A DNA stretch of 64,000 bases, taken from contig NC_134030.1 of assembly GCF_964204645.1 (NCBI RefSeq), forward strand, positions 11,429,947-11,493,946, in the 5' to 3' direction. Of this stretch, positions 5,881-45,400 are shown one piece after another. Under the pieces are notes generated by a model that searched no databases, was not told the DNA's origin, and saw nothing but the letters and a program-made list of their open reading frames with translations. This DNA comes from Tubulanus polymorphus. Its lineage: Eukaryota; Animalia; Nemertea. The position numbers and the translations under genes were made by a program. Numbering within the stretch: position 1 is the first letter of the stretch; each line of letters begins with the position of its first letter.

Positions 5881-6221
5881 TTTGTCGTGTTATCTTAGTT
5901 TTGTCGTTTTATCGTAATGTCGCCCTCATTTGCATATTCGTATTTTTTTACGCATGGCCCATATCAGCCACCATACCAAACCAACCCAAGACGGAGAAAA
6001 CTTGGGCCGACATGTTTTTAAACCCAAACAATAAACAAAAACTCACCACATTTAGTCCTGTAGTCGTTCAAAGGCAGCAGTAGTCAATCACACACGGCTT
6101 ATCCAAAATGATAATCGGAGGATTTCCACACTAAAAAGTGTATATCATTACTAACGTTTTAATAAGACGCCTACAAGCGATACTAACTACTCTGGGAAAA
6201 CCCAGGCCTTGCACAGCGCGC

Positions 6222-6264
6222 TATATAAGCTTACATATTACTGGGATTCGAACCTTACTCAGTT
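6222..6264 (+). promoter_or_regulatory. Candidate DHRS4 core promoter (TATATAA 6222-6228; Inr-like TCAGTT 6259-6264)
   Basis: Both motifs lie 50-90 bp upstream of the ATG, but TATA-Inr spacing is longer than canonical. Confidence 0.35.
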
Positions 6265-6313
6265 CATTCACTTCATTTCGCTCAGGCAGTAGTGAAGGTG
6301 TAAACATCCGAAG

Positions 6314-6477
6314 ATGAGAGCCCTTGCAGCTGCCCTAGTAAATAATGGTATTACTGCCGCCGCTCTGCCTTCAATTCGAACAAGTATTGCACGAAGAATG
6401 ATGAATAACGTAGCTTCTGAAATGAATAGAAAGAAGTTGGATGGGAAAGTTGCAGTTGTCACCGCTTCGACTGCTGG
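6314..6477 (+). CDS. DHRS4: DHRS4 coding exon 1 (MRALAAAL...LDGKVAVVTASTAG)
   Basis: ATG at 6314, open frame to the donor GTGGGT at 6478 (phase 2). Alternative in-frame ATGs at 6398, 6401 and 6422. Confidence 0.88.
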
Positions 6478-12400: not shown

Positions 12401-15400
12401 AGGGATGTTTTATACCTGAGACAGGTATTTTTGATCAGCCAATTATGACGCAATTGGCGACCATCTTGGTTTCATCAGTACTCATTCGTAGGTGGGAAAA
12501 TGTTTTTCCACATTATATTGATACCTAAGCGTATTTTGTTACCACAATCAATTAGAAACTTGTAGCTCATAACGTGTTCTATGATTTTGGTGAGTTTCAA
12601 GGTCATTGGTTTTTGTATATGGCCACCAGGGGGCATTGAATAATACAATATCTTAATATTTCTATATTATATTTGTATCAACGCATATTTTGTAACCACA
12701 ATCAATTGCAAAGTTGTAGCTCATGACATAATCTATGATTGTGGCTTGTTTTAAGGCCATCAGTTATTCTATATGGTCACCGGGGGGCGTTGAATAGTAG
12801 AATAACTTAGTATTTCCTTATTATATTGGTACCCAGGCATACAGTCAAATCCCATTATACCGCCAACATCGGGATCACGGAAATTTTGGCGTTATAACGG
12901 GATAGGCGGTATAGCAAGAGTTCACTAAAACTTCCCATTTTTCCATCAAATTTTGTGCAATATGTCAAAATAAATAAAGAATAACAATAAAGACCAACAA
13001 ATTACTTGTTTTTATGGACTCTTCAAACACAAAATATTACGGCCAATAGGCAATATTACTAATTGATCCGCTGGAGGCAAACGGCACTGAAAGAATGCAG
13101 CGTGCACGTGTTTGTCAATTAAAATCCATCACCGATTTTTAGCCCACTTGGGACTTTAGTCCCAGCAGGCTATTGCGTTCACTTTTCGTCCGTCCGTCCG
13201 TCCGTCCGTCCGTCCGTCCGTCCGTCCGTTTGTACGAATGAACCCTTGTGCAACTTTAATACCTTGTGCAACTTTATAAACAATGTAAATTTCTACAGAT
13301 GATTTTATGTTATAAAGTGTTTGATTTTCACCAGAATGTTGATTTAGTATCTTCTAAAACATATTAATAAGACATAATGACAAAAAATTATCTTAGAATT
13401 CTTTTCCGCTGTCAAAATAATTGCATTACATTAATGATTCCACAGAAAGTTGCACAATCCCTTGGACAAAAATGCATGGACAGATCTCTATGGACTATGG
13501 ACATTTTCAGGAAGTGCTGTCCTCTACAGGAGGATAAAGTTTTTGATGAGAAAGTTGCAGAAAGCTTTTCACTGAAAGTTACATAGGGATTATTACCTAA
13601 AGTTGCAGAAGGTCTCATGGACATGATAAAGTTGCAGAGGGCCATGGACAGTTTACAGTGTGTAATGTCTGCACATAATGTTATGTTATGCCAAAATCTA
13701 CTCACTATAGATTTAATTTCCTTAATTGGATATTTCCTCTGAACTTTTGACCAATTTTGCATGACGTATTTGAATTTTGAATTTTTGAATTGTAAACAGC
13801 TTTCAGATATTGAGTCATATGCGGTATCATTGGGGATTTATGTCCATTAGGTTGACAATCCATTATTATTATTTTTTAGTTGTCAAGACATTGCATATAA
13901 ATCTCATTCAGCCAAAAAGGTCTATTTAATCTACTCAGCGTAATTCATAGGGAAAGAGCAAATTGATCTGAAGTGTTTGTTCCTGCCGACCACTGTCTGT
14001 GTTAATTGAAAAATACTGCACATATTGTATGTATCTTTGCAATTTGTATAATTTTAAGACGAGAAATGGAGCTTCAGGCTTGTTAGAATGAACAAATCTA
14101 ATTAAAAAGTGGCAATATTTTGAGAAAAAATTATCTCCTATTTACCAATTTTTCTTACGAATTACTCTTAGAAGATATTTTGCCTTCTTATTCTACCTCA
14201 CAAAACACTAATCCAAACTGAGTGTTTTCATGAGTACTAGTACAAATAGTTTCAACAATTGCTACCAAGGGCAATTTTGAATGCCTATTGCCTGAAATAT
14301 GATGCTCTCTCGAATGTATGACTGTTAGGCCGGTGCAATCACAATGATGATGATTAGATAGATGTTTTTCTCACGTTTCGAGGTTTTAACTAAATCCTAT
14401 TATCAATGAAATGAAAATTGTAATATAATCGTAATATGATTGTAATATAATCCAAAAAGCCCATGTCAATACGGCATTGAGCTGGCCGTATATTTTCTAT
14501 AGGTTGAACGCAGATTTGGCGCGTAGCAAGATGGCACTTTGTACGCTACACTCAACCAGGATGATTGGAGTAATTTATTCACGTATGTGGCCGATTTTTC
14601 AATAGTTATTAGCATAAGAAGCTACTAAAAAGAACGAAAATACTTATTAGCATTGTTAAACCCTAACTATCAACAATATGTGATGATGAATGTATTTCGC
14701 TGACATTAGATAGTTATCGCTGACATTAGATAGGTAGTTGTACACCAAATGGTCAAACTGCTGTTCGCTAGCTGGAGATTTGGTTCAGAATGGATTTTAA
14801 AATATATACAACACAATGATGATAGCTTGGAAGCACCATCTTTAAATCATTTTCAGTATCAGATTACTTTAAAGCTGTCTCACTAAGTGCAGAATCATGT
14901 GCAAACACCCCGAAAGTGTGGTATTCAAGCTAATTTGGTACCGGACAAGTATGTTACTTTGTAAGCCAAAAATCCTAAGTAAAAGCCACTTAAGAGACAA
15001 TTTCTAAGATTAGACAAAATAGGTACATAGACAACGATTATTTAGCAGTATGTTTATTCCAGATAATGTATGGAGATAAGACTTTGTTATAGGCCTAGGG
15101 TAACCCGTATTAGAGTTGAAAGTTTCCAGATTTTCTGTGATAATAGCTGATTCTATGTGTCAGTTTCTAAGGTCATTGCATGGATATAATCAGGGGCAGA
15201 TCTAGGATTTTTCAAGGGGGATGGCTGACAAGAATTTTGAAAAAGCCTCTGGGAAAATGGTGGAATTTGTCAGTATTTGTGCGATGGTTTCTGTGAAAAT
15301 TATGACAACCTGCTGAGCCATGGCCAGGATGAGGTGTTGATAATTTTGATGAGATTATTAGGGGAAGCAGGTAATTTCTCAAGTATTTGTCATGGTACTG

Positions 15401-18400
15401 TTTTGGGAAATTTTTGACACAGATTGGGAAAGAAGTCAAATAGTTATGATTGGGAAAATAATCGTTTATCGGATACATATACGGCCTAGCGGAATGGGTG
15501 GAGATACACTAACTCATCTACAACGGAATGGTTCGGTAAAGTAAGTGCAGATCCGCACCTCTCGTAAATGGTTCAATCAACTGTATTAAATATCACTATT
15601 TCACAGTCAAAATGTCATCAGCAATTCAGTACATAAGTGTATTTTATGATATCTTCACCTGGAGATCTCAAACTCGTATTGCTCGTAGCATAGTACGGCG
15701 TCATATAATAGGTATATAATACAATAAAGTCGCAATGCTACTGTTATTTTTGATTCTGAGGCAGCTAATAACATTCTTATTTCATCTTCTTAGAGGCTAT
15801 TGACACGAAGAAGCCCCTCGCAGAAAATTTTTATCTCCTATTCACCCCCCTTAGATCTACCCCTGATAATTAATTACCTGTGATTGAAATTGAAAATTTG
15901 ACCAGTTTCGAAGATACTATGATAAAACTATGAACTTTCAGGTTTATCATTCATGGAACATCTGTGTTCTTTTATTCATATGATGAGTAATCAGCCAGTT
16001 TCTCTAATAAAAACCTTTTCTTATTAACCACTGGGAATTTTATGTATACCGCATCTGATTAAGTCCTCAGGATTCTTTGTTTTAACATAAGATTACATAA
16101 GTGTAATATATCAGCAGGCCCTATTCTATTTGAGAGAGGAATTGTTTGATGTGCTTGAGTTCAGATTCTAAATATTATGAGTGATTGATCTTGTAGGAGA
16201 GATCTCTAAGGAGAGATTTGAAGCTACTCCAATTTTAATGTTCTGTTTCAAAGTAACAAAGATATATGTCGGCATGAGATTTGAGTGGGCTTCTGGACTT
16301 ATGTACCCCAATATACAGTCCTATATATGCGACCCAGGTTGTGTATGTCCCTGGTTCCATATTGCGTATTGTGGCTTTTTTTCTTATCTATCCCTCTCCA
16401 TTTGTAATTTGTGGTTGGAACATCTATATATACTGACCGAAATTCTTTGGCTTTGCGATAATGATGTGAGATATTTTCTAGCGTAAAGTCAGTTTTAGCT
16501 ACGAGCAATCATGATTGCTTGAGGTTTTAGGTATCTAGTCTAGAGGATGACATCCATTGATGTTATATACAGTTTGCCTAGCAGACTTTCTTTTCTCAAA
16601 TACAACAGCTTTACTTTTACTGATATAAATCACCAATTTCAACCTTTTACAATAAGTAATAGCATATCAAGGTTGTTATTGTTCATGAAAGCTGTTGTAA
16701 ATTGAAAATTGAATTGTGGTCATGGGAATTTGGCATTATCTACCTCAAGTAATCAAAACCATGTTAATAATTGTAATTTTGTAGTTTCCATTAAGAAAAA
16801 TTTTTTATATTGAATATACGTACATTTATGTGGATTGTTTATCCATAATGATTTATGAAACATAAATCGATCTCACTTGAAATGGCGACAAGAACGACTG
16901 TGTCCAATTAGATATGTTTGCATGATCAGTCAGTAATCAGGTTTTATTATGACGCCAAAAAAATTACTCCTTGTTGAGCCTAAAAGTTGACCCACCCATC
17001 TACCCTGTACATTACTTTTGAAAAAATCATGATCAAGCTAAGCACAACAGACCCAGCCCTGAAATGAACTGATTGCAAATTTTATTGCAGTTTTCAAAAG
17101 TGCTTACCTACATGTAAACATGGTTTAGCATGAATCGAATAATCGATTTCCTTGTCATCCAAAATGGATAAGACAAACTATTTGTCTAGATTACTGTATA
17201 AATCTAATACCTGTTGAGGCTTATATATGATGTTCTACATTTTTTTGATGTGTATATGATTTAAAACTACATGCAAACTAATATAGACCTAATGTGAAGT
17301 AGAATTATTAGGTAAGAGATCAAACATTTGTTATGAGTAGTCAGTTGCAGCGCTTTGATAAAAGTTGTGGCAACAATCACTCAATAAAATAATGAGACCA
17401 CAAGTTATGATTTCAGTTAAAGTATCCTATAAAATGCTATAATTTTAACATTTTATTACTCTTTCTTATTGAAAAGATTTGACGACTGGATTTTCCTGGA
17501 CACAACAATCTATAGTAAATCTAGGTTATTTTCAAATCAAGTAAAGAGGACGAATATTCTGTGACCAGCACATTTGACAGATTTTAAGATCAATAAACAT
17601 CATTCTACTTATATTGAAATGATATTGAATTTGAAAACTATATTTATCAGTTTGATGGTGATTAGGTGACCAGTTAACTTTAATTAAATTCATCCCGCTG
17701 AGACTCAGAATTTAGAATGGACCTGGGATGTTTCTGTCCACGCACACAGATTCAGTCCGTTCTAGATATTTGATCATTTAGTCTAAATTGGTTTGGTTTA
17801 AAATGAAACTGGCCCATTCGGAACAGATGTTTCACTTAGGTGAATGCTTGGTCTCTTCATGGACTAGAACATTTTAGAGTCCATGGTCTGTTCTAAATCA
17901 GTGAGGTCAAATTTAGACCCTTCTAAAACTATTGTGAATGTGGCTTATAAAACCATCTGGAGAAATGTATGATCTTTTCTATATTGACCCTGTTAAACTT
18001 TCATACATCCATAGACCTAATGAAACTTAATCAGTATGTTAACTTTTTATGGTTTTTCAACCAGGGATATTAACAGAATATCAATATTTTAATAATAGTT
18101 ATTCTCTATGAATACTCAATGAAGACATCTAGAATATACAATCTGGGTGGGGATTTATTGCTTTGTAACTTTTAGGACTGATTCATGTGAATAAGATCTT
18201 TAATGAAGCTTCAAGTTGCAAGAAATTCTGTTCACATTTGATAATCAGGTTTTGAAAGGTTCTGCTTCAATTCAAAGTGAAGTTGTTTTGTTATTTGTCG
18301 AAACAAATTGATGTTGAGACAAACTGTTCTGTGAACCTATGATCATGGTGATAAAATCTCATTGGGGGCAAATCTATATAATTACTGGGTCAAAGACAAA

Positions 18401-21400
18401 CATTCCCACAAGACAGTATTAGTTATATAGTACCACACAACAGCATAGTGCTCACACACATATACAGACACATTCTACTGCCAGAAAGTGGAATGAATCT
18501 CCTGGGATTTTGAGGATTTAAAATGGGGACTCAAATGAATTACTATCTCCTCTAAGATGAACTATAGTCCCCTGTGTACATGCATATTTGTGACTTAACA
18601 ATAAAAAGTCTAGAGTTCATGCAAACTGGTTATTAACTGACTATTAAGAACAATATTTTCCCTTTTAATTTAAGTATGTATTTTGAGGATATAAATTCAG
18701 GACTCAGACGAATTCCTATCTCCTTTTTGAGAAACTATAGTCCCCTGTGTACATTCAAAGATTTGTGACTAAACAAAAGTCTAGTGTTCACACAAACTGT
18801 TAATTAATTGGTTATTTTCCCTTTTAAAGTATATATTTTGAGGATTTAAATTCGGGACTCAAACGATATACTATCATCATTACTACTTTCATGCAAACTG
18901 GTTATTAACTGACTATTAAGAACAATATTTTCCCTTTTAATTAATGTATGTATTTTGAGGATTTGAATTGTTCTATTTTCCTTACACATTTCTATGTGTA
19001 AGTAAGTATATATCCATATATCAAATGAAACGAAGGATTTAGAAATGAGGTTCCGTTTATATTGAATTAAAAGGATTTGTCATAGTTCCTTGCACTCAAA
19101 AATGTATAAGTCAAAATATCTATGTAACCATATAAATCTAATGAATGTTGAGGCGTCTATTTGATGTGTTTAACACTTCCCTACAAGTATATAATAAAGC
19201 TACATTTAATTTATAAGGAACGTTATATTAGACTGATATATCATACTTTAAAGAAAGGATTTGTTGGATATCCTTGTCGCAAGGAAAATATATGACAAGA
19301 TATCTACATAAAAGTTTAAATCTAATCTGTGTTCAAGCTTGTATTTGATACTATCCTACATGTAAATGACAAATTTCTATTCAATTTAATATAATATGAA
19401 GCAGAAGTATTCCCAAATAGGTGGTCAAACATTTGTTCTGGGTAGTCTGTTTGTGGAAACAGTCACTCCTCAAATGAAAGATCAGATTAACCCTATTATT
19501 TCAAAAAGAATTATCCGATAGAATGCTATTACTTGTTAATGATTCATCAGGGTAATAAAATGTTCTGAATTCAATCACCTGTCTATAAAACAAACTACAA
19601 AAATGTAAGAAACCTATCATCACTTTATGAGATTGTTTAAATTCTGAGAGCTTTCCAAGTAGGAGTACAATTGGAATAACAAAATTGATTTTATTTTATT
19701 TCATTTCATTTTTCTCTCTTTAAATAAATATAATCTATTAAGGCATCTGAAGAATATACGATTTTGATGGTCATTATTATACCTGAAAAATACTTGTGTC
19801 TTATCCAACTACCTGTGCAACTCTAGGACCGATAATCTAAATGCAGTTTTTATGAATACTAGACAAACTTCAATCCAAGAAATTCTATTTGCTTTAAATG
19901 ATCAGATTCTCTCTTCAGTATCTCAAAAATTTACAATTTGTATGGGTATGAGTTACCCTTGGAAAAACTTATCTTTTATCCAAGGACCTGTGCAACTCTC
20001 GGACGGATATATCTGAATACAGTTTTCTTGAATAATGTGTGAACTCCAACAGTTCAAACAATTCTCTTCATATTGAGTGATCAGATTTTGATATAAGGTG
20101 TTGCTCCTATTCAAAGAAAAGGATCTGTTTTATTTTGTTGTCTTAAAAAATGTATATGACAAAATATTTGCATAACCGTATAAATCTAATTCATGTTCAG
20201 GCTTATATGATCTGTTTGACAATTACCTACATGTACATGATAAGTTTACATTCAATTTGATATAATTATAATAGAAGATAATTGAAGTAGAAGTATTCCC
20301 CAATAGGTGGTCAAACATTTGTTCTGAGTGTAGTCAGTTGCAGCGCTTTTATAAAGTTCGTGGAAACAGTCATTCCTTAAATAAAAGATAAGATTTACCC
20401 CATGATTTCAATTGAAATTAACCAATAGAATGCTATAAATTTTAACATTGTGTCATTCTTTCTAAGGAAAACGTTTCATCAGTATAATAAGTTGTGTTAA
20501 ACTTAATTAAAACTAACTTCACAAAAATCATAGCATTTTCTTTTACAGACTCCATTTGTCCATTTGTACCTTAATAGTGGCCATAGGACTCTGAAACATC
20601 TCAGGCTGTTAGGGAAAGGTTAAATCTAAGTGTACAAAGTTTAAAAAGGGCCTTAGACCCTTGGTTGCGGAGCCAGAAACTTTCTTGCGCGGCCATACCA
20701 GGGACCTCACGCTGCCACGCAACCACTTTTCCAGGTGTCGGAGGACCCTTTAGAGAGGACCCTTTTTAGACTCTGAAATTTCTCGGGTATCAAGAAGGGT
20801 TCCTATTGTACGTACAGAACTATTAAAACCTTTGGCCGTGGGACCGTTGAGCCTATGCGTCCCTGCCAAAACCATGAAAATGAGTGTCGGAGATCGAGAG
20901 CTAAAAAGCTACCCCCTTCTAACTTCTCGGGCGACCCTTTAGAAAACTCTTAGCACCCTCCAATATTTTTTTAGTTAGGGGGAGATCTTATTTAAGGGTA
21001 CGGGGCTTACAAAGGACCCTTGACTTATTCGCAGAGCAGAAAAATTTTCCGGGGATGCGCTCCACCCTTTAGAGAGGGCCTAGGGCTCTAAAACTTCTTG
21101 CATATTTAGACGGGGTCCTATCGTACATATAGAACCATTAAAAGCTTTGGGCGGGGGAATGTTGAGCCTAGGCGCCCCATGCCCAAACTGCGAAAATGAG
21201 TGTAGCAGATAGTTGAAAATACACTAAGATGATCCCGGAAAAGCGAAGGGCAACCCTTGATAGTGGCCCTAGGGAATCTGAAACTTCTGAGGCACTTAGG
21301 GGAAGGTCTAATCGAAGTGTGCAAAGCTTAAAAAAAGGCCCTTAGACCATGGGTTGCGAAGCCAGAAACGTCGTGCGGCCATACCAGGGGTCTCTGGCAG

Positions 21401-24400
21401 CCGCACAACCACATTTCGGGGGGGGGGGGGGGTCGGAGGACCCTGTAGAGAGGGCCTAGGGTTCTGAAACTTCTCGGATATTTGGAAGGGGTTTAGTAAG
21501 TATAGAACCATTAAAACCCTTGGCCGGGGGTCCGTTGAGAATTTTTTGCTGGGGTCTGATGCACCTAGTTGTCCCCTGCCCAAACTGCGAGAATGAGTGT
21601 CGGAGATAGACTGAAAATACACTACATTGAGACCTGAGAAGCCACCCCCTTCTTACTTCTTGGGTGACCTTAATAATGAACCTAGGGATCCGAATCGTCT
21701 TATGCGCCTAGGGGAGTGTCTATTCTAATTAAAAAAGGGCCTTAGACCCTTGGTTTTTGGGTGAGAAACTTTGTCACGCAGCCATACCAGGGGTCTCTGG
21801 CAGCCGCACAACCACATTGCGGGGGGTCGGAGGGCCCTTTAGAGAAGGCCTAGGGCTCTGAACCTTCTCCGGTATTTAGAAGGGGTCCTATCATACGAAT
21901 AGAACCTTTAAAACCCTGGGCCGCGGGTCTGTTGAGCCTAGGCGCCTCCTGCCCAAACTGCGAAAATGAGTTTTTTGAGATTAAGAGCTGAAAAGGGACC
22001 CCCTTCTAACTTCTCGGGTGACCCTTTAGAAAGCTCTTAGCACACTCAAATTTTTTAGACAGAGGAGGGTCGCTAAGTGTGCAAATCATTAAAAAGGGCC
22101 CTAGACCCTTGGTTGTGGAGCGAGAAACTTCGCGCGGCCATACCAGTGGTCTCTGGCCGCAGCGCACGACCACGAAAAGCGAACCCCTTCTAACTTCTCG
22201 GCCGACTTTGTAGAAAGCTCTTAGCACCCTACAATATTTTTTTAGATAGGGGATGGTCTTATCTAAGTGTACAACGCTTAGAAAATGACCCTAGACTCTT
22301 ATTTGCGGTGCAGAATTTTTTTGCTGGGGTCCGATGAGCCTAGTCATCCCCTGCCCAAACTGTGAAAATGAGTGTTTGAGATAGTTGAAAATACACCAAG
22401 TTGTGACCTGAAAAGTGACCCCCTTCTTACTTCTCAGGCGACCCTCTAGGGTTCTGAAACTTCTCAGGTATTTAAAAGGGGTCCTAAGGTATAGAACCAT
22501 TAAAACCCTGGGGCTGGGGGCCCGTTTAGCCTAGGCGCCTCCTACCAAAACCTCATAAATGAGTGTCAGAGATAGTTGAAACCTGAAAATTGACCCCCAT
22601 CTAACTTCTCTGGCGACCCTTGGCAGGCAAATAAGTTAGGCTCTTATCTAAGTGTACAAACTTAGAAAATGCACGCACAACCTTCCATTGAGTAGCAGCG
22701 CCCCCTATATTTTTGGTTAACTAAGTAAAATAGGGACTTCAAACAAACTTTTAACGAGTCAGACGACTTGAAGAATGTAAAAAAGAGTCGAAATAGCGTC
22801 TGCAAAACGGGTTTATCTGAAAACCGGACATAGTTATTAGCTTAAGAAATTTTTGAAAAACTTGGAAAAGCAATGTTGGCCTTTGGTTCCCTAGTCATTT
22901 TCTTATGATAGCGATAATAACTAAACTAGGGCTAAACTGGATTATTCTTTTCAATCGTTTTTCTCCTATCATAAGTTTTCATTTGACACCGAGTTTTAAA
23001 GTTAACCTTCAAAAATAAAAAAGTTATGGACGTTTTTGTGATTTAAAAATTTAATTATTTGTCTATGAAACTAATTTCACAAAAATCATAGAATTTTCTT
23101 GTACAAAATCATTTTGTCCATAGACCTTGTGCAACTTTATGAAATTGCTTAATATATATGAGGGCATTACAATTTGGATTGTTATTGAATATCGGAATTA
23201 ATTTCATTTTATTGCAATTCTTTTATATAGATATACTCTACTAATGTATCTCTAACAATACAATTTGTATGGGTATGAGTAACCCTTAATCAAAACTTAT
23301 TTTTTGTCTAAGGACCTGTGCTACTTTTGGACAGGAATACAGTTTTCCTAAATAATGTACAAACTCGAATGATTCCAACAATTCACTTCATATTGAGTGG
23401 CCAGATTTTGATATTAGGTGTTGCATCTATTCATAGAAAAAGATATGTCTTATTTCGATATCTCAAAAGATGTATAAGAAAAATTTCTACATAACCGTAT
23501 GAATCTTATGCGTTTTCTGGCTTCTATTTGATCTGTTCGAAACTTACCTACAGGTACGTAAAAAATTTTAATTCAATTTGATATAATTTGAAGTAGAAGT
23601 ATTCCCAGATAGGTGGTCAAACATTTGTTCTGAGTATAGTCTGTTGCAATGCTTATATCAAGTTCGTGGAAACAGTCACTCGTCATATAAAAGATAAAAT
23701 TTACCCCATGATTTCAATCAAAATCAACCAATAGGATTCTAGAACTTTTGACATTGTTTTACTCTTTCTAACGAAAATGATTCATCAGGGTAATAAGTGG
23801 TTTTGAATTTAGTTATTTGTCTTTAAAACTAACTTCACTAAAATCATAGAATTTTCTTGTATAAAATCATTTTGTCCATAGACCTTGTGCAACTTTATGA
23901 AATTGCTTAATTTCTGAGGATTGCTATGAAAATATCGGAATTAATTTCATTTTATTGCAATTCTTTTGTATCAATATCCCCTACTAAGGTATCTCTAACA
24001 ATACAATTTGTATGGGTATGAGTTACCCTTAATCAAAACTTAGTTTTTATTCAAGGACCTGTGCAACTTTCGGGCGGGAATACAGTTTTCCTGAATAATC
24101 TACTAACTCGAATGGTTCAAACAATTCTCTTCATATTGAGTGGCCAGATTTTGATATTAGGTGTTGCATCTATTCATAGAAAAAGATATGTCTTATTTCG
24201 ATGTCTTAAAAGATGTATAAGAAAAATTTCTACATAACCGTATGAATCTTATGCGTTTACTGGCTTCTATTTGATCTGTTCGAAACTTACCTACAGGTAC
24301 GTAAAAAATTTTAATTCAATTTGATATAATTTGAAGTAGAAGTATTCCCAGATAGGTGGTCAAACATTTGTTCTGAGTATAGTCAGTTGCAATGCTTATA

Positions 24401-27400
24401 TCAAGTTCGTGGAAATAGTTACTCATCATATATAAAATAAAGATTTACCCCATGATTTCAATCAAAATCAACCAATAGGATTCTAGAACTTTTGACATTG
24501 TTTTACTCTTTCTAATGAAAATCATTCATCAGGGTAATAAGTTGTTTTGAATTTAGTTATTTGTCTTTAAAACTAACTTAACTTAAATCATAGAATTTTC
24601 TTGTATGAAATCATTTTGTCCATAGACCTTGTGCAACTTTATGAAATTGCTTAATTTCTGAGGGCTTTACAATTAGGATTGTTATTGAATTTCGGAATTT
24701 ATTTCATTTTATTGCAATTGTTTTGTATAGATATGCTCTACTAAGGTATCTCTAACAATACAATTTGTATGGGTATGAGTTACCCTTAATCAAAACTTAT
24801 TTTTTATCCAAGGACCTGTGCAACTTTCGGGCGGGAATACAGTTTTCCTGAATAATCTACTAACTCGAACGGTTCAAACAATTCTCTTCATATTGAGTGG
24901 CCAGATTTTGATATTAGGCGTTGCATCTATTCATAGAAAAAGATATGTCTTATTTCGATATCTCAAAAGATGTATAAGAAAAATTTCTACATAGCCGTAT
25001 GAATCTTATGCGTTTTCTGGCTTCTATTTGATCTGTTCGAAACTTACCTACAGGTACGTAATAAATTTTAATTCAATTTGATATGATTTGAAGTAGAAGT
25101 ATTTCAAAATAGGTGGTCAAACATTTGTTCTGAGTGTAGTAAGTTACAATGTTTATATCAAGTTCGTGGAAACAGTCACTCGTCATATAAAAGCTAACAG
25201 TTACCCCATGATTTCAATCAAAATCAACCAATAGGATTCTAGAACTTTTGACATTGTTTTACTCTTTCTAACGAAAATCATTCATCGGGGTAATAAGTTG
25301 TTTTGAATTTAGTTATTTGTCTTTAAAACTAACTTCACTTAAATCATAGAATTTTTTTGTATGAAATCATTTTGTCCATAGACCTTGTGCAACTTTATGA
25401 AATTGCTTAATTTCTGAGGATTGTTATGAAAATATCGGAATTAATTTCATTTTATTGCAATTCTTTTGTATCAATATCCCCTACTAAGGTATCTCTAACA
25501 ATACAATTTGTATGGGTATGAGTTACCCTTAATCAAAACTTATTTTTTATCCAAGGACCTGTGCAACTTTCGGGCGGGAATACAGTTTTCCTGAATAATC
25601 TACTAACTCGAACGGTTCAAACAATTCTCTTCATATTGAGTGGCCAGATTTTGATATTAGGCGTTGCATCTATTCATAGAAAAAGATATGTCTTATTTCG
25701 ATATCTCAAAAGATGTATAAGAAAAATTTCTACATAGCCGTATGAATCTTATGCGTTTTCTGGCTTCTATTTGATCTGTTCGAAACTTACCTACAGGTAC
25801 GTAATAAATTTTAATTCAATTTGATATGATTTGAAGTAGAAGTATTTCAAAATAGGTGGTCAAACATTTGTTCGGAGTGTAGTAAGTTACAATGTTTATA
25901 TCAAGTTCGTGGAAACAGTCACTCGTCATATAAAAGCTAACAGTTACCCCATGATTTCAATCAAAATCAACCAATAGGATTCTAGAACTTTTGACATTGT
26001 TTTACTCTTTCTAACGAAAATCATTCATCGGGGTAATAAGTTGTTTTGAATTTAGTTATTTGTCTTTAAAACTAACTTCACTTAAATCATAGAATTTTTT
26101 TGTATGAAATCATTTTGTCCATAGACCTTGTGCAACTTTATGAAATTGCTTAATTTCTGAGGATTGTTATGAAAATATCGGAATTTATTTCATTTTATTG
26201 CAATTCTTTTGTATCAATATCCTCTTCTAAGGTATCTCTAAAAATACAATTTGTATGGGTATGAGTTGTTACCCTTAATCAAAACTTATTTTTTATCCAA
26301 GGACCTGTGCAACTTTCGGGCGGGAATACAGTTTTCCTGAATAATCTACTAACTCGAACGGTTCAAACAATTCTCTTCATATTGAGTGGCCAGATTTTGA
26401 TATTAGGTGTTGCATCTATTCATAGAAAAAGATATGTCTTATTTCGATATCTCAAAAGATGTATAAGAAAAATTTCTACATAACCGTATGAATCTTATGC
26501 GTTTTCTGGCTTCTATTTGATCTGTTCGAAACTTACCGACAGGTACGTAAAAAATTTTAATTCAATTTGATATAATTTGAAGTAGAAGTATTCCCAGATA
26601 GGTGGTCAAACATTTGTTCTGAGTATAGTCTGTTGCAATGCTTATATCAAGTTCGTGGAAACAGTCACTCGTCATATAAAAGATAAAATTTACCCCATGA
26701 TTTCAATCAAAATCAACCAATAGGATTCTAGAACTTTTGACATTGTTTTACTCTTTCTAACGAAAATCATTCATCAGGGTAATAAGTGGTTTTGAATTTA
26801 GTTATTTGTCTTTAAAACTAACTTCACTAAAATCATAGAATTTTCTCGTATGAAATCATTTTGTCCATAGACCTTGTGCAACTTTATGAAATTGCTTAAT
26901 TTCTGAGGATTGCTATGAAAATATCGGAATTAATTTCATTTTATTGCAATTCTTTTGTATCAATATCCCCTACTAAGGTATCTCTAACAATACAATTTGT
27001 ATGGGTATGAGTTACCCTTAATCAAAACTTATTTTTTATCCAAGGACCTGTGCAACTTTCGGGCGGGAATACAGTTTTCCTGAATAATCTACTAACTCGA
27101 ACGGTTCAAACAATTCTCTTCATATTGAGTGGCCAGATTTTGATATTAGGCGTTGCATCTATTCATAGAAAAAGATATGTCTTATTTCGATATCTCAAAA
27201 GATGTATAAGAAAAATTTCTACATAACCGTATGAATCTTATGCGTTTTCTGGCTTCTATTTGATCTGTTCGAAACTTACCTACAGGTACGTAATAAATTT
27301 TAATTCAATTTGATATGATTTGAAGTAGAAGTATTTCAAAATAGGTGGTCAAACATTTGTTCTGAGTGTAGTAAGTTACAATGTTTATATCAAGTTCGTG

Positions 27401-33400: not shown

Positions 33401-36400
33401 TGATTTCAATCAAAATCAACCAATAGGATTCTAGAACTTTTGACATTGTTTTACTCTTTCTAACGAAAATCATTCATCAGGGTAATAAGTGGTTTTGAAT
33501 TTAGTTATTTGTCTTTAAAACTAACTTCACTAAAATCATAGAATTTTCTTGTATGAAATCATTTTGTCCATAGACCTTGTGCAACTTTATGAAATTGCTT
33601 AATTTCTGAGGATTGCTATGAAAATATCGGAATTAATTTCATTTTATTGCAATTCTTTTGTATCAATATCCCCTACTAAGGTATCTCTAACAATACAATT
33701 TGTATGGGTATGAGTTACCCTTAATCAAAACTTATTTATTATCCAAGGACCTGTGCAACTTTCGGGCGGGAATACAGTTTTCCTGAATAATCTACTAACT
33801 CGAACGGTTCAAACAATTCTCTTCATATTGAGTGGCCAGATTTTGATATTAGGCGTTGCATCTATTCATAGAAAAAGATATGTCTTATTTCGATATCTCA
33901 AAAGATGTATAAGAAAAATTTCTACATAACCGTATGAATCTTATGCGTTTTCTGGCTTCTATTTGATCTGTTCGAAACTTACCTACAGGTACGTAATAAA
34001 TTTTAATTCAATTTGATATGATTTGAAGTAGAAGTATTTCAAAATAGGTGGTCAAACATTTGTTCTGAGTGTAGTAAGTTACAATGTTTATATCAAGTTC
34101 GTGGAAACAGTCACTCGTCATATAAAAGCTAACAGTTACCCCATGATTTCAATCAAAATCAACAAATAGGATTCTAGAACTTTTGACATTGTTTTACTCT
34201 TTCTAACGAAAATCATTCATCGGGGTAATAAGTTGTTTTGAATTTAGTTATTTGTCTTTAAAACTAACTTCACTTAAATCATAGAATTTTTTTGTATGAA
34301 ATCATTTTGTCCATAGACCTTGTGCAACTTTATGAAATTGCTTAATTTCTGAGGATTGTTATGAAAATATCGGAATTTATTTCATTTTATTGCAATTCTT
34401 TTGTATCAATATCCTCTTCTAAGGTATCTCTAAAAATACAATTTGTATGGGTATGAGTTACCCTTAATCAAAACTTATTTTTTATCCAAGGACCTGTGCA
34501 ACTTTCGGGCGGGAATACAGTTTTCCTGAATAATCTACTAACTCGAACGGTTCAAACAATTCTCTTCATATTGAGTGGCCAGATTTTGATATTAGGTGTT
34601 GCATCTATTCATAGAAAAAGATATGTCTTATTTCGATATCTCAAAAGATGTATAAGAAAAATTTCTACATAACCGTATGAATCTTATGCGTTTTCTGGCT
34701 TCTATTTGATCTGTTCGAAACTTACCGACAGGTACGTAATAAATTTTAATTCAATTTGATGTAATTTGAAGTAGAAGTATTCCCAGATAGGTGGTCAAAC
34801 ATTTGTTCTGAGTATAGTCAGTTGCAATGCTTATATCAAGTTCGTGGAAACAGTCACTCGTCATATAAAAGATAAAAATTACCCCATGATTTCAATCAAA
34901 ATCAACCAATAGGATTCTAGAACTTTTGACATTGTTTTACTCTTTCTAATGAAAATCATTCATCAGGGTAATAAGTGGTTTTGAATTTAGTTATTTGTCT
35001 TTAAAACTAACTTCACTAAAATCATAGAATTTTCTCGTATGAAATCAATTTGTCCATAGACCTTGTGCAACTTTATGAAATTGCTTAATTTCTGAGGATT
35101 GCTATGAAAATATCGGAATTAATTTCATTTTATTGCAATTCTTTTGTATCAATATCCCCTACTAAGGTATCTCTAACAATACAATTTGTATGGGTATGAG
35201 TTACCCTTAATCAAAACTTAGTTTTTATTCAAGGACCTGTGCAACTTTGGGAAGGGAATACAGTTTTCCTGAATAATATTCAAACTCGAACATTTCAAAT
35301 TATTCTCTTCATATTGAGTGGACAGATTTTGATATTAGGTGTTGCATCTATTCATAGAAAAAGATATGTCTTATTTCGATGTCTTAAAAGATGTATAAGA
35401 AAAATTTCTACATAACCGTATGAATCTTATGCGTTTACTGGCTTCTATTTGATCTGTTCGAAACTTACCTACAGGTACGTAAAAAATTTTAATTCAATTT
35501 GATATAATTTGAAGTAGAAGTATTCCCAGATAGGTGGTCAAACATTTGTTCTGAGTATAGTCAGTTGCAATGCTTATATCAAGTTCGTGGAAATAGTTAC
35601 TCATCATATATAAAATAAAGATTTACCCCATGATTTCAATCAAAATCAACCAATAGGATTCTAGAACTTTTGACATTGTTTTACTCTTTCTAATGAAAAT
35701 CAATCATCAGGGTAATAAGTTGTTTTGAATTTAGTTATTTGTCTTTAAAACTAACTTAACTTAAATCATAGAATTTTCTTGTATGAAATCATTTTGTCCA
35801 TAGACCTTGTGCAACTTTATGAAATTGCTTAATTTCTGAGGGCTTTACAATTAGGATTGTTATTGAATTTCGGAATTTATTTCATTTTATTGCAATTGTT
35901 TTGTATAGATATGCTCTACTAAGGTATCTCTAACAATACAATTTGTATGGGTATGAGTTACCCTTAATCAAAACTTATTTTTTATCCAAGGACCTGTGCA
36001 ACTTTCGGGCGGGAATACAGTTTTCCTGAATAATCTACTAACTCGAACGGTTCAAACAATTCTCTTCATATTGAGTGGCCAGATTTTGATATTAGGCGTT
36101 GCATCTATTCATAGAAAAAGATATGTCTTATTTCGATATCTCAAAAGATGTATAAGAAAAATTTCTACATAACCGTATGAATCTTATGCGTTTTCTGGCT
36201 TCTATTTGATCTGTTCGAAACTTACCTACAGGTACGTAATAAATTTTAATTCAATTAGATATGATTTGAAGTAGAAGTATTTCAAAATAAGTGGTGAAAC
36301 ATTTGTTCTGAGTGTAGTAAGTTACAATGTTTATATCAAGTTCGTGGAAACAGTCACTCGTCATATAAAAGCTAACAGTTACCCCATGATTTCAATCAAA

Positions 36401-39400
36401 ATCAACCAATAGGATTCTAGAACTTTTGACATTGTTTTACTCTTTCTAACGAAAATCATTCATCGGGGTAATAAGTTGTTTTGAATTTAGTTATTTGTCT
36501 TTAAAACTAACTTCACTTAAATCATAGAATTTTTTTGTATGAAATCATTTTGTCCATAGACCTTGTGCAACTTTATGAAATTGCTTAATTTCTGAGGATT
36601 GTTATGAAAATATCGGAATTTATTTCATTTTATTGCAATTCTTTTGTATCAATATCCTCTTCTAAGGTATCTCTAAAAATACAATTTGTATGGGTATGAG
36701 TTACCCTTAATCAAAACTTATTTTTTATCCAAGGACCTGTGCAACTTTCGGGCGGGAATACAGTTTTCCTGAATAATCTACAAACTCGAACGGTTCAAAC
36801 AATTCTCTTCATATTGAGTGGCCAGTTTTTGATATAAGGGTTTGCACCTATTCATAGAAAAAGATATGTCTTATTTCGTTGTCTTAAACGATGTATAAGA
36901 ATAATTTCTACATAACCGTATGAATTTGATGCGTGTTCTAGCTTCTATTTGATCTGTTCGAAACTTACCTACAGGTACGTAATAAATTTTAATTCAATTT
37001 GATATAATTTGAAGTAGAAGTATTCCCAGATAGGTGGTCAAACATTTGTTCTGAGTATAGTCTGTTGCAATGCTTATATCAAGTTCGTGGAAACAGTCAC
37101 TCGTCATATAAAAGATGATATTTACCCCATGATTTCAATCAAAATCAACCAATAGGATTCTAGAACTTTTGACATTGTTTTACTCTTTCTAACGAAAATG
37201 ATTCATCAGGGTAATAAGTTGTTTTGAATTTAGTTATTTGTCTTTAAAACTAACTTAACTAAAATCATAGAATTTTCTCGTATGAAATCAATTTGTCCAT
37301 AGACCTTGTGCAACTTTATGAAATTGCTTAATTTCTGAGGATTGTTATGAAAATATCGGAATTAATTTCATTTTATTGCAATTCTTTTGTATCAATATCC
37401 CCTACTAAGGTATCTCTAACAATACAATTTGTATGGGTATGAGTTACCCTTAATCAAAACTTATTTTTTATCCGAGGACCTGTGCAACTTTGGGAAGGGA
37501 ATACAGTTTTCCTGAATAATATTCAAACTCGAACAGTTCAAACAATTTTCTTCATATTGAGTGGCCAGATTTTGATATTAGGTGTTGCACCTATTCATAG
37601 AAAAAGATATGTCTTATTTCGATGTCTTAAAAGATTTATAAGAATAATTTCTACATAACCGTATGAATCTGATGCGTTTTCTGGCTTCTATTTGATCTGT
37701 TCGAAACTTACCTTCAGGTACGTAATACATTTTAATTCAATTTGATATCAGTTGAAGTAGAAGTATTTCCAAATAGGTGGTCAAACATTTGTTCTGAGTG
37801 TAGTCAGTTGCAATGTTTATATCAAGTTCGTGGAAACAAGTCACTCATCATATAAAAGATAAAAGTTACCCCATGATTCCATTCAAAATCAACCAATAGG
37901 ATTCTAGGACTTTTGACATTGTTTTACTGTTTCTAAAGAAAATGATTCATCAGGGTAATAAGTTTTTTTGAATTCAATTATTTGTCTTTAAAACTAACTT
38001 CACAAAAATCATAGAATTTTCCATCAATTCAATCAATTTGTCCATAGACCTTGTGCAACTTAATGAAATTGCTTAATTTCTGAGGATTGTTATGAAAATA
38101 TCGGAATTTATTTCATTTTATTGCAATTCTTTTGTATCAATATCCCCTACTAAGGTATCTCTAACAATACAATTTGTATGGGTATGAGTAACCCTTAATC
38201 AAAACTTAGTTTTTATCCGAGGACCTGTGCAACTTTGGAAGGGAATACAGTTTTCCTGAATAATATTCAAACTCGAACAGTTCAAACAATTCTCTTCATA
38301 TTGAGTGGCCAGATTTTGATATTAGGTGTTGCACCTATTCATAGAAAAAGATATGTCTTATTTCGATGTCTTAAAAGATTTATAAGAATAATTTCTACAT
38401 AACCGTATGATTGCTTATGCGTTTTCTGGCTTCTATTTGATCTGTTCGAAACTTACCTTCAGGTACGTAATACATTTTAATTCAATTTGATATCAGTTGA
38501 AGTAGAAGTATTTCCAAATAGGTGGTCAAACATTTGTTCTGAGTGTAGTCAGTTGCAATGTTTATATCAAGTTCGTGGAAACAAGTCACTCATCATATAA
38601 AAGATAAAAGTTACCCCATGATTCCATTCAAAATCAACCAATAGGATTCTAGGACTTTTGACATTGTTTTACTGTTTCTAAAGAAAATGATTCATCAGGG
38701 TAATAAGTTTTTTTGAATTCAATTATTTGTCTTTAAAACTAACTTCACAAAAATCATAGAATTTTCCATCAATTCAATCAATTTGTCCATAGACCTTGTG
38801 CAACATTATGAAATTGCTTAATTTCTGAGGATTGTTATGAAAATATCGGAATTTATTTCATTTTATTGCAATTCTTTTGTATCAATATCCCCTACTAAGG
38901 TATCTCTAACAATACAATTTGTATGGGTATGAGTTACCCTTAATCAAAACTTAGTTTTTATCCGAGGACCTGTGCAACTTTGGGAAGGGAATACAGTTTT
39001 CCTGAATAATATTCAAACTCTAAGGGTTCAAACAATTCTCTTCATATTGAGTGGCCAGATTTTGATATTAGGTGTTGCATCTATTCATAGAAAAAGATAT
39101 GTCTTATTTCGATGTCTTAAAAGATGTATAAGAAAAATTTCTACATAACCGTATGAATCTCATGTGTTTTCTGGCTTCTATTTGATCTGTTCGAAACTTA
39201 CCTACAGGTACGTAAAAAATTTTAATTCAATTTGATATAATTTGAAGTAGAAGTATTCCCAGATAGGTGGTGAAACATTTGTTCTGAGTATAGTCAGTTG
39301 CAATGCTTATATCAAGTTCGTGGAAACAGTCACTCGTCATAAAGATAAGATTTACCCCATGATTTCAATCAAAATCAACCAATAGGATTCTAGAGCTTTT

Positions 39401-42400
39401 GACATTGTTTTACTGTTTCTAATGAAAATGATTCATCAGGGTAATAAGTTGTTTTGAATTTAGTTATTTGTCTTTAAAAATAACTTCACTAAAATCATAG
39501 AAATTTCTTGTATGAAATCATTTTGTCCATAGACCTTGTGCAACTTTATGAAATTGCTTAATTTCTGAGGGCTTTACAATTAGGATTGTTATTGAATTTC
39601 AGAATTTATTTCATTTTATTGCAATTCTTTTGTATAAATATGCTCTACTAAGGTTTCTCTAACAATACAATTTGTATGGGTATGAGTTACCCTTAATCAA
39701 AACTTATTTTTTATCCAAGGACCTGTGCATCTTTCTGGCGGGAATACAGTTTTCCTGAATAATGTACAAACTCGAACGGTTCAAACAATTCTTTTCATAT
39801 TGAGTGGCCAGGTTTTGATATAAGGGTTTGCACCTATTCATAGAAAAAGATATGTCTTATTTCGTTGTCTTAAACGATGTATAAGAATAATTTCTATATA
39901 ACCGTATGAATCTCATGCGTTTTCTGGCTTCTATTTGATCTGTTCGAAACTTACCTACAGGTAAGTAATAAGCTATAATTCAATTTGATATAATTTGAAG
40001 TAGAAGTATTCCCAGATAGGTGGTCAAACATTTGTTCTGAGTATAGTCTGTTGCAATGCTTATATCAAGTTCGTGGAAACAGTCACTCGTCATATAAAAG
40101 ATAAAATTTACCCCATGATTTCAATCAAAATCAACCGATAGGATTCTAGAACTTTTGACATTGTTTTACTCTTTCTAATGAAAATCATTCATCAGGGTAA
40201 TAAGTTGTTTTGAATTTAGTTATTTGTCTTTAAAACTAACTTCACTTAAATCATAGAATTTTTTTGTATGAAATCATTTTGTCCATAGACCTTGTGCAAC
40301 TTTATGAAATTGCTTAATTTCTGAGGATTGTTATGAAAATATCGGAATTAATTTCATTTTATTGCAATTCTTTTGTATCAATATCCTCTTCTAAGGTATC
40401 TCTAACAATACAATTTGTATGGGTATGAGTTACCCTTAATCAAAACTTATTTTTTATCCAAGGACCTGTGCAACTTTGGGAAGGGAATACAGTTTTCCTG
40501 AATAATATTCAAACTCGAACGGTTCAAACAATTCTCTTTATATTGAGTGGCCAGATTTTGATATTAGGTATTTCACCTATTCATAGAAAAAGATATGTCT
40601 TATTTCGATGTCTTAAAAGATTTATAAGAATAATTTCTACATAACCGTATGATTCTTATACGTTTTCTGGCTTCTATTTGATCTGTTCGAAACTTACCTA
40701 CAGGTACGCAATAAATTTTATTTCAATTCGATATAATTTGAAGTAGAAGTATTCCCAGATACGTGGTCAAACATTTGTTCTGAGTATAGTCAGTTGCAAT
40801 GCTTATATCAAGTTCGTGGAAATAGTTACTCATCATATAAGAAATAAACATTTACCCCATGATTTCAATCAAAATCAACCAATAGGATTCTAGAACTTTT
40901 GACATTGTTTTACTCTTTCTAATGAAAATGATTCATCAGGGTAATAAGTTATTTTGAATTTAGTTATTTGTCTTTAAAACTAATTTCACTAAAAACATAG
41001 AATTTTCTTCTACGAAATCATTTTGTCCATGGACCTTGTGCAACTTTATGAAATGGCTTAATTTCTACATAACCGTATGAATCTTATGCGTTTTCTGGCT
41101 TCTATTTGATCTGTTCGAAACTTACCTACAGGTAAGTAATAAGCTATAATTCAATTTGATATAATTTGAAGTAGAAGTATTCCCAGATAGGTGGTCAAAC
41201 ATTTTTTCTGAGTATAGTCACTTGCAATGCTTTAAACAAGTTCGTTGAAACAAGTCACTCGTCATATAAAAGATAAGAGTTACCCCATGATTTCATTCAA
41301 AATCAACTACATTGCAATTCTTTTGTATAGATATGCTCAACTAAGATATCTCTAAGAATACAATTTGTATGGGTATGAGTTACCCTTAATCAAAACTTAT
41401 TTTTTATCCAAGGACCTGTGCAACTTTCGGGCGGGAATACAGTTTTCCTGAATAATGTACAAACTCGAACGGTTCAAACGATTCTCTTCATATTGGGTGG
41501 CCAGGTTTTGATATAAGGTGTTGCACCCATTCATAGAAAAAGATATGTGTTATTTCGATGTCTAAAAAGATGTATAAGAAAAATGTCTACATAACCGTAT
41601 GAATCTGATGCGTGTTCTGGCTTTTATTTGATCTGTTCGAAACTTACCTACAAGTACGTAATACATTTTAATTCAATTTGATATCAGTTGAAGTAGAAGT
41701 ATTTCCAAATAGGTGGTCAAACATTTGTTCTGAGTGTAGTCAGTTGCAATGTTTATATCAAGTTCGTGGAAACAAGTCACTCATCATATAAAAGATAAAA
41801 GTTACCCCATGATTCCATTCAAAATCAACCAATAGGATTCTAGGACTTTTGACATTGTTTTACTGTTTCTAAAGAAAATGATTCATCAGGGTAATAAGTT
41901 TTTTTGAATTCAATTATTTGTCTTTAAAACTAACTTCACAAAAATCATAGAATTTTCCATCAATTCAATCAATTTGTCCATAGACCTTGTGCAACTTCAT
42001 GAAATTGCTTAATTTCTGCTTTACAATTAGGATTGTTTTTGGAATATCGGAATTTATTTCATTTTATTCCAATTCATTTGTATCAATGTCTTCTACTGAG
42101 GTTTCTGTAATAATCTAAGGACCTGTGGAACTTTCGAATGGGAATACAATTTTTCGAATAATGTCCAAATTCCACAGTTCAATCAATTCTCTTCATATTG
42201 AGTGACCAGATTCCGAAGTAAGGTGTTGTTCCTATTCAAAGGAAAAAGATCTGTCTCATTTCGTTGATAATGTATATATTTGATCTGTTCGAAACTTACC
42301 CACATGTACAAGATAAGTTTACATTCAATTTGATATAATTTTGAGTATAAGTATTTTCAAATAGGTGGTCAAACATTTGTTCTAAGCATAGTCATAAAGT

Positions 42401-45400
42401 TCATGGAAATAGTCACCCCTTAAATAAAATAAACGATTTGCTCTACGATTTCAACCAAAATTAACCGATCGATTTCTAGAACTTCTCACATTGTTTTACT
42501 CTTCAAACAGAAGACGATTTATCAGGTATTTGCCCTATGGACTCAATTATTTATTTGACTAAATTTTTCATGGAAGCTGAGTATCAGAATATAATTAGTT
42601 GATCCATTCATATATTAAATCAGTACATTTTTACCAAATTCTTATTTCCGGGTTTATTCTTTTAAATTAATTAGGATCGGTTAGGTCTCTTAACCTTTTT
42701 TGTCTAAACCTGTTTTTTTTTCTCAAGAAATACAAATTCTCGATCATAATGAACTTATATCATGCAGAGTGAAGAGCAGTGCTTTGATTTTTCAATGCTT
42801 CATTATTGAAATTTGATTGCATTTGATATACTTGTAAACTCTTCTATGCATGCTGAAATTCTGAATATTATGTATTTGTCGAAGTTACACAGGGCCTATT
42901 TGTCAGAACACATTTTCAAAGTTGCAGAAGGATTGAATTTTGAAGTTGCAGAAGGCCAAAGTTGCAGAAGGTCTAAAAGTTGCAGAAGGCCTGTTCGTCT
43001 GTAGTAGCGTCCGTCCGTCCGTCCGTCCGTAGACGGAATCCAGTTATTTTGGGAAGTTTTGAAGACGCTTCAAGGTAATGTCTTGATATTTGGTTTATAC
43101 ATGTATCTACCCTAGACACATCTTCAGCCCAAAAACTGGCCCTATCAGATTCAAGATGGCCGACTGGCAGCCATTGCTGTTCGCCAAAATCAGCACTTTT
43201 TACACATTTTCGAAGTTTACGAGGGAAATCTTGAAGACGGTTTGATCATTTACCTTGATCTTTCGATTATAATTGAATCTACCAAGGGCCCATCAGCATA
43301 AGAAAAATTTGGTCCATCTGACTCAAGATGGCCGTCCTATGACCTTTTTAGTGCCCAAAAATGTCAAATTTGGCCAGAATTCTAGGTCCTGTAGCTTCCT
43401 ACTGGTTTGCCATTTCTCATTGCAATTTGTGATGGGTATTCTTTGTAAAGGGATGTTTTATACGTGAGACAGGTATTTTTGATCCGCCAATAATGATGCA
43501 ATTGGTGGCCATCTTGGTGTCATTAGTACTTATTTGTAGGTGGGAAAAAGTTTTTCGACATTATATTGATACCTAAGCATATTTTGCTACAACAATGAAT
43601 AAGAAAGTTGTAGCGTATAACGTGTTCTATGATTGGGGTGAGTTTCAAGTTCATTGTTTTTTGTATATGGCCACCAGGGGGCGTTGAATAATACAATATC
43701 TTAGTATTTCTATATTATATTTGTACCAATACATATTTTGTTACCGCAATCAATTGCAAAGTTGTAGCTCATGACATCTTCCATGATTATGGTGAGTTTT
43801 AAGGACATTAGTTAATGTATATGGTCACCAGGGGGCGTTGAATAGTAAAATAACCTGGTATTTCCTTATTATATTGGTACCTAGGCATATTTTGTTACCA
43901 TCATCAATTGCAAAGTTGTAGTTCATGACATGTTCTATGAATATGGTGAGTTACAAGGTTATTGGGTTTTGAATATGGTCACCAGGGGGCGTTGAATAGT
44001 AGAATAACTTAGTATTTCCATATTAAATTGTCAACGAGGCATTGTTTGTTATCACAATCAATTACAAAATCATAGCTGCTGACATGTTTTATGATTTTAT
44101 TGAGTTTCAAGGTCATTGGTTTTTGTATATGGTCACCAGAGGGCGTTGAATATTGAAATTGTTTGATTGTTGAGCATTTGAAACCACTTCCCAAGTGGGC
44201 ATGGTGTCCCTGGACCCCTAGTTAATTATCGAGTGCAATGTTTGCGTAAGGTCCTTGTATTGTTTATTTACTCGCTCTGAAAAAGTCAGTTATCTGCGAC
44301 TGCTTCATAGATAAGCCTGTCAGAGTGTCCAGACGAGATCCAATTTGATTGATAGCTCGGATGTTTTCTTCGGTTGCGTACTTGTTCGATTCCAAGTAAC
44401 GAAGTAACGAACGGATTGCATAACGAGCTTCTGACGATGTCGGTGGTTTCTCCGGTTCAGGGTAATCCTCTTCTTCATCATCGCCATTGTCATCATTCAT
44501 GTCACTTCTCACTAAATCTAAAATCTCATCATCCTCTAATATCGCGGTAGATGGTAGTTCTTTATCGACGTCGACGTATTCTTCCTCCGTCATAAGCATT
44601 TCGGGAGCAATGCTGAGTGCAGCCACTAAACGTTCAAACAGATTGTCACCAGTTCTAGGTCGGGTAGAAGTTGTATTGGTTGACGAAGATTCTTCCGATG
44701 TTTCAGCAGTTTCTGTCATTAAACTTTCAAACAAATTTCTCCGAGGAGCGCTCGTCTGTGGCCTCACGACAGATGGCCAGTTTTCTGGCAGAACTTTGCT
44801 ATGCTTGAAACAGTTAGCTATCGTTTCTCTTGAAACTCTATCCCATGCCGACTTAGCATATCTAATTGCATCACTGAGCTCAAGTTTTGGAGGTCGATTA
44901 TTGTCAATGGCATCAACAAGATGTTGTATTTGCAGCCTCCGGTAGTGCGTCTTCATGTTCTGAATGACGCCCGCATCCATAGGTTGAATGTGGCTAGTTG
45001 TGTTTGCCGGGAGAAAGTGCACGGTTACATTTCCAAGTGACAACTCGCCGTTCTCGTCCTCCAGTACAATATGTGACGGTGCGTTATCTAAGATTAGTAG
45101 CACGTGGCGATTTTGAGAATGCATTTTCTGGTTGAAATTTTCCAACCACTCGAAGAAAATTATGCTCGTCATCCACGCCTTCTTGTTCGCTTCATAATCA
45201 CAATATAGCTGGGAGTTGAAACCCTTGAAACAGCGTGGACGTTTACTTTTACCAATCACAAGGAGGCGGCATTCCTCAGTGCCGTCTGAATTAGCACAAA
45301 CAGCAAGTGAGATTCTCTTTTTAATTTTTTTGTGCCCTTTACAAATTCTGAGGTAGTTAAGGATCAATCAGGCAAGAGGGCATAATATAAACCAGTCTCG

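Follow-up and report, generated by a model that had tools for sequence, protein, structure and literature searches.

A family of giant non-autonomous elements in the GTCC tract of HINE transposons of Tubulanus polymorphus, with a carried hexamer that suggests site-specific exchange

Among the DNA transposons of animals, target specificity is rare, and published accounts of Dada and Crypton elements leave unexplained how these replace or carry bases of their targets. Here we describe a 29.8-kb insert in a 64,000-nucleotide stretch of the nemertean Tubulanus polymorphus (contig NC_134030.1, positions 11,429,947 to 11,493,946; in the following, the window), which splits a HINE transposon inside its GTCC microsatellite tract, and the family to which this insert belongs. 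CryptonV elements, as far as they are summarized in a later account (Kapitonov and Jurka 2012, via PMC8869645), likewise insert specifically into microsatellites and have no true terminal inverted repeats (TIRs). Unlike them, the copies read here hold no recombinase gene, the tract lies inside another transposon and a length of 5-48 kb is reached through an internal satellite. The active CryptonF-1_cRei of Chlamydomonas recombines a fixed donor motif at one terminus with a near-identical short target and leaves clean empty sites (PMC9977147), whereas donor and target here match at two of six bases plus a flanking T and the target is a repeat within a HINE. Dada-tA and Dada-tY are also target-specific, lack TIRs, carry a hexamer on one or both sides and echo their subterminal inverted repeat in the target, but they are elements of 5-11 kb with a DDE enzyme and RNA-gene targets, for which neither motif arrays nor hexamer-bearing empty sites are reported (PMC3706591, PMC8869645). 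Tn916 and Tn1549 share with our family an unmatched coupling sequence of 5-6 bp that is resolved by replication and target flanks that resemble the element ends; however, they are bacterial and autonomous and their coupling sequences vary (PMC12229494), whereas one hexamer persists here even in a copy diverged by about 20%. Endogenous nimaviruses with tyrosine recombinases are likewise elements of very large size in animals, with simple repeats as integration sites (PMC10871703), but the repeat is another one and viral genes are lacking here. The host element shares the layout of HINE/DINE-1, namely a T-rich site, subterminal palindrome, microsatellite and central repeats (PMC4067079), which concerns the target and not the insert. 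The insert itself is no Helentron/HINE with subterminal inverted repeats of 12-15 bp, a 3' palindrome and TT insertion, as its ends differ and its site is a GC-rich tract. Overall, the kind of element is known; new are the target inside a HINE, the record of candidate footprints and a satellite cargo that bears the end motifs.

In the window, HINE copy 2 is interrupted within its tract, with ten GTCC units on the left (13188-13227) and five on the right (43009-43028), after which it continues as copy 1 does. An earlier note, made from the letters of this DNA alone, had described this split and placed the insert at 13230-43007; the insert is real, and its edges are better set at 13229 and 43009, the last six bases (43004-43009) being a hexamer. 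The imperfect inverted repeat of about 45 bp claimed for the ends was recovered as a 47-bp alignment with 34 identities, far above shuffled sequences (score 21 versus a maximum of 4 in 2000 controls). Likewise recovered were the two 14-bp motifs at the left end (13244-13275) and four inverted ones at the right end (42918-42989), to which six overlooked inverted copies have to be added, five at 13446-13641 and one at 42881-42894. Also missing from that description was the 743-bp satellite that makes up about 19 kb of the insert. A true TIR is absent, consistent duplication is limited to CGT, the right arm resembles the target tract, and six-frame open reading frames (ORFs) of the insert gave none of note. 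The insert comprises a left part of about 9.9 kb, the satellite from 23.1 to 42.0 kb and a right part of about 1 kb, with the following features (window coordinates):

13136-13228, plus strand: 5' part of the host HINE with T-run, subterminal palindrome and left GTCC tract (97% identity to HINE copy 1, 11915-11981)
13223-13228, plus strand: left-junction hexamer, here of the target type CGTCCG (junction comparison)
13229-43009, plus strand: the complete non-autonomous element with its right-end hexamer, 29,781 bp in all (from comparing the junctions at 12 loci)
13229-13275, plus strand: left end, a short arm with ACGAA followed by two direct 14-bp motifs
13446-13641, minus strand: inner cluster of five inverted 14-bp motifs, conserved in other copies
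13700-19000, no strand: AT-rich non-coding interior common to all long copies, in which no recombinase remnant was detected
15191-15865, no strand: nested insert resembling a miniature inverted-repeat transposable element, with 16-bp TIRs, present in W, C9, C5, C4 and C2 (copy names explained below)
17146-17479: further decayed satellite monomer
19036-20563, plus strand: old and decayed monomers of the satellite (65-80% identity with the 743-bp unit)
20570-22620, no strand: GC-rich diverged tandem repeats, with related repeats (67-75%) close to contig ends and at a few internal positions
23100-42000, plus strand: about 26 monomers of the 743-757-bp satellite, each with two end motifs
42113-42526, plus strand: decayed monomer that borders the array on the right (68%)
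42881-42989, minus strand: right-end array of five inverted 14-bp motifs
42990-43003, plus strand: right arm, resembling the target tract at 9 of 13 positions, with TTCGT, the inverse of ACGAA in the left arm (sequence reading)
43004-43009, plus strand: element-borne hexamer GTAGCG, a putative overlap or coupling sequence, found with the adjoining arm only at six element right ends genome-wide
43010-44221, plus strand: 3' part of the host HINE with the remaining tract, body, four 154-bp central repeats and 3' end

The genome search with the insert ends that the earlier note had proposed was carried out over the whole assembly (268 Mb, 77 contigs) and gave 12 loci, which we name by contig, W being the copy in the window. 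Both ends are paired in five complete copies (W, 29.8 kb; C9, 33.4 kb; C5, 48.2 kb; C3a, 18.7 kb; C3b, 4.9 kb), whereas five loci retain the left end only (C4, C2, C1, C3c, C5b) and two the right end only (C1, C8). The family is young: divergence is 0.5-3% among the young copies and reaches about 11% for C2 and the C1 left end and about 20% for C8. No sister family beyond the C8 copy was found in a relaxed motif-pair search of the genome. With 12 loci, no enzyme of its own and all ends at HINEs, the proposal of a non-autonomous, multi-copy and target-specific element with paired ends is supported. Every intact junction lies in a HINE GTCC tract, nine of nine on the left and seven of seven on the right; at a tenth left end the junction is deleted and adjoins the HINE 5' end. 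All insertions have the same orientation relative to the HINE, of which the assembly contains at least 601 empty tracts. The suggested targeting of a microsatellite is thus borne out for the tract. However, nearly all (GTCC)3+ tracts in a sample of 100 matches from C1 belong to this HINE, and therefore targeting of the HINE and of the microsatellite are inseparable.

In a comparison of six pairs at non-CpG sites, divergence was 0.5-2.8% between inserts but 2.4-12% between the HINEs that host them, 4-9 times higher (p from 7e-4 to 5e-23). Judged by sequence divergence, this shows that the insertions into HINEs were independent. Two hosts have a shortened HINE 5' end. The host of W belongs to a young and abundant subfamily with 39 other bodies at 95-97% identity, only two of which are family sites while several are demonstrably empty. 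Segmental duplication as the source of the copies was rejected because their outer flanks are unrelated.

The right end reads arm, hexamer, T and tract. Its fixed hexamer GTAGCG (ATAGCG in two copies), standing in place of the target hexamer CGTCCG, is a new observation: this type replaces the target at six of seven right ends, and at the remaining one, in C3a, there is a short deletion at this position. Since the genome contains arm and hexamer together at six places, all of them right ends of the element and including the diverged C8, the hexamer travels with the element. On the left the order is tract, hexamer, T and arm; six copies have the target hexamer here, C9 and C5 have GTAGCG, and C2 has a decayed form. 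Crypton elements are characterized by direct repeats of 4-6 bp at both termini. Here, only C9 and C5 carry the full hexamer, as the 7-mer GTAGCG(T), on both sides, and elsewhere the two sides share three bases, CGT flanking both in most copies. When the ends are joined they form a site with short inverted ACGAA arms centred on the hexamer. As expected for Crypton/CryptonV, there is neither a TIR nor a long direct repeat in the family. The same junction pattern is compatible with a Dada-type duplication of 6-7 bp that is occasionally replaced by a carried hexamer.

The hexamer also occurs in empty HINE tracts. In 49 of them GTAGCG stands exactly in register; counted by hand, these represent 35 distinct contexts, which the two tract backgrounds share as 16 and 19, and about a dozen further tracts bear CpG-decayed forms, giving a total of about 60. 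One empty tract retains seven more bases of the right arm. The hexamer lies 10 bases from the 3' boundary of the tract in 36 of 50 hexamer-bearing empties, and the same spacing is found in four of the six filled sites that bear it. HINE body haplotypes are distributed 44 to 7 among these empties versus 657 to 254 genome-wide (p = 0.03). The out-of-register form that slippage from the tract boundary of the HINE itself would produce occurs only three times, and slippage was therefore rejected as the main source of the hexamer. Empty sites with two adjacent duplications were not seen among the empty HINE tracts. We infer that the hexamer-bearing empties are excision footprints, some of which would have multiplied later with the HINE.

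One hexamer-bearing HINE haplotype exists in about 14 copies (C5:15.82 Mb, C13, C47, C74 and others), several of them in tandem at a spacing of 2.1-2.5 kb; the presence of both body variants in it points to conversion. At C2:6.49 Mb and C4:15.34 Mb, old loci join a HINE-like 5' end to an inverted and truncated right part of the element.

Taking these data together, we lean towards the view that the insert is a non-autonomous DNA transposon and that a Crypton/CryptonV-like tyrosine recombinase, acting in trans, mobilizes it with exchange of a 6-bp overlap. The recombinase would bind the arrays of 14-bp motifs, presumably as accessory binding sites. Excision would yield a circle in which the right arm, the hexamer and the left arm are joined, and this circle would recombine with the tract of a HINE, in most cases 10 bp upstream of the boundary between tract and HINE body. 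Because donor GTAGCG and target CGTCCG share only the last two bases, the 6-bp joint would be mismatched and could be resolved by replication or repair. The right junction would then retain the donor hexamer and the left one either of the two, and vacated sites would often hold the donor type. A fixed donor word, a 6-bp overlap between inverted arms, a single orientation and a clean hexamer exchange all appear to fit a tyrosine recombinase, whose sites in the Crypton model consist of two inverted arms around 6-8 bp (PMC3212892); unmatched coupling sequences of about 6 bp are known from Tn916 (PMC12229494). A more far-reaching version, for which we have only tentative confidence, is that of a transposon of a transposon: a giant recombinase-driven animal element with its attachment site at a defined position in a HINE, a Tn916-like heterologous 6-bp exchange, dozens of footprints and a satellite bred from its own recombinase-binding sites.

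Several observations speak against a tyrosine recombinase. A pure coupling-sequence model predicts some right ends with the target hexamer, and none is clear (in C3a the position is deleted). One- and two-sided hexamer replacement has been published for Dada DDE transposons (PMC8869645). The shared spacing of 36 of 50 hexamer-bearing empties and their leaning to one haplotype (p = 0.03) count here as well, and a HINE sub-lineage or gene conversion could explain part of these tracts. The enzyme poses a further problem. The coding search covered the family outside the interiors of the two C1 copies, C5b and C8; in the copies read, neither six-frame ORFs nor a CryptonA-type profile, built locally from 150 recombinase proteins, which divergent spliced recombinases would escape, revealed a recombinase gene. 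None of the genome's PF00589 and PF12012 matches lies in or near a family member, and an autonomous partner with the same end arrays was not found in the assembly. The same copies contain no long ORF and no transposase of the element's own, contrary to the prediction of the earlier note that some long copies would encode one enzyme or the other. The partner enzyme may be absent from the assembly, may have diverged ends or may reside within an uninspected copy. The tyrosine-recombinase mechanism suggested in the earlier note is favoured by the junctions, but Dada stays compatible and no copy read supplies an enzyme.

The strongest rival, which we consider unlikely but by no means negligible, is a giant non-autonomous Dada-type DDE element that targets the HINE tract, GTAGCG(T) being an ancestral target duplication that is carried along and replaces the hexamer on one or both sides. 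Dada elements have no TIRs, duplicate 6-7 bp and bear short subterminal inverted repeats that are equidistant from the site and recur in the target (PMC3706591); on one side or on both they can exchange the hexamer of the target for their own (PMC3706591, PMC8869645), and C9 and C5 with their 7-mer on either side would agree with this. However, complete Dada elements measure 4.7-11 kb and target small-RNA genes, compared with 5-48 kb and a HINE tract here, and arrays like those of the 14-bp motifs are not described for them (PMC3706591, PMC8869645). No Rfam match was found in 19300-47000, including the right junction and the HINE body, so that a small-RNA-gene target is not supported. Furthermore, no empty target with a replaced hexamer was found for Dada-tA (PMC3706591), versus about 60 such tracts in this genome.

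Another cut-and-paste element (Zisupton/KDZ, CACTA-like or similar) with ends in GTAG, a 3-bp CGT duplication and subterminal transposase-binding repeats seems improbable. Subterminal motif arrays are common in DDE elements, CGT flanks both sides of most copies and KDZ genes are present in the genome. On the other hand, Zisupton/KDZ elements have target duplications of about 8 bp and short TIRs, whereas the outermost bases here are not inverted repeats and an 8-bp duplication is absent. Such an element would not explain why GTAG precedes the left junction in C9 and C5 or why empty tracts hold the hexamer in register, and a genome scan for PF18758/KDZ gave no match within a family member. Slightly less probable still is a single ancient insertion that has since moved jointly with its HINE by rolling-circle (Helentron) transposition, the target specificity being only apparent. 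Each complete copy does lie between HINE ends, the hosts of W, C9 and C1R are 95-97% identical, those inserts that are most alike also have the hosts that are most alike, and HINE copies do swap variants. But the hosts of C5 and C3b are only 86-91% identical to those of W and C9 although their inserts are 96-99% identical, the 5' end is short in two hosts, the tracts differ on both sides of every copy, and the close relatives of the W host include the empty HINEs described above. Joint movement may still hold for the subgroup W, C9 and C1R, and for it alone. Finally, an assembly artefact or chance chimera of two HINEs, which the earlier note had named as a possible refutation, is highly improbable: the array length of any single copy may be mis-assembled, yet five complete copies on four contigs show the same junctions between unrelated outer flanks.

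The internal satellite accounts for two-thirds of the length of W and occurs almost only inside the element family; 119 of 120 genome matches to a conserved 16-mer of it fall within family members. Each monomer holds two of the 14-bp end motifs, older decayed monomers flank the array on both sides, and size differences among copies mostly reflect monomer number. A 12.8-kb internal duplication in the C5 array proved not to be an exact repeat. The satellite may have grown by unequal exchange from a motif-bearing subterminal segment and would now travel as cargo. The GC-rich repeat at 20570-22620 is related to repeats near several contig ends, which suggests captured subtelomeric DNA.

The family shows that cargo can reach 48 kb and that a satellite can be born and kept within one element family. 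As filled sites, hexamers on one side or both and some 60 candidate footprints occur together in a single genome, the exchange model is directly testable. The recombinase, if found, would be a candidate site-specific integrase for large cargo.

A 627-aa ORF in C3a is not a gene of the element; it is the open transposase of a nested piggyBac-type element with TTAA flanks (4300-6560 of the extracted sequence), and deeper in the same copy lies a second nested element of 1.9 kb with flanks of the 8-bp type. A 1.9-kb Crypton family with a DUF3504 recombinase (five copies of about 98% identity) is related to the insert neither in its ends nor in its targets; it has a 5' hairpin and inserts into AT-rich sites. 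A single-copy 538-aa ORF with a Crypton-type recombinase domain (positions 748-2361 of the extracted locus) is possibly a domesticated gene. Spliced KDZ genes were found at C2:16.36, C8:2.54, C6:11.06, C12:8.55 and C4:6.66 Mb, each accompanied at a distance of 15-18 kb by a young HINE body, and gene and body are oriented to each other alike in all five; these pairs probably represent one large KDZ element family with a HINE passenger.

The window contains further elements. Directly 3' of the host HINE (44264-45669) lies a pogo/Tc5-type element, two frames of which encode HTH_Tnp_Tc5 and DDE_1 domains. In a foldback-type element at 6902-8406, a 50-bp tandem array is enclosed by inverted arms that consist of 43-bp tandem units. 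Degenerate TAACCC repeats, which resemble telomeric ones, fill about 1 kb at an internal position (3908-4998), and a 228-aa ORF at 865-1551 has a weak GIY-YIG match below the Pfam cut-off.

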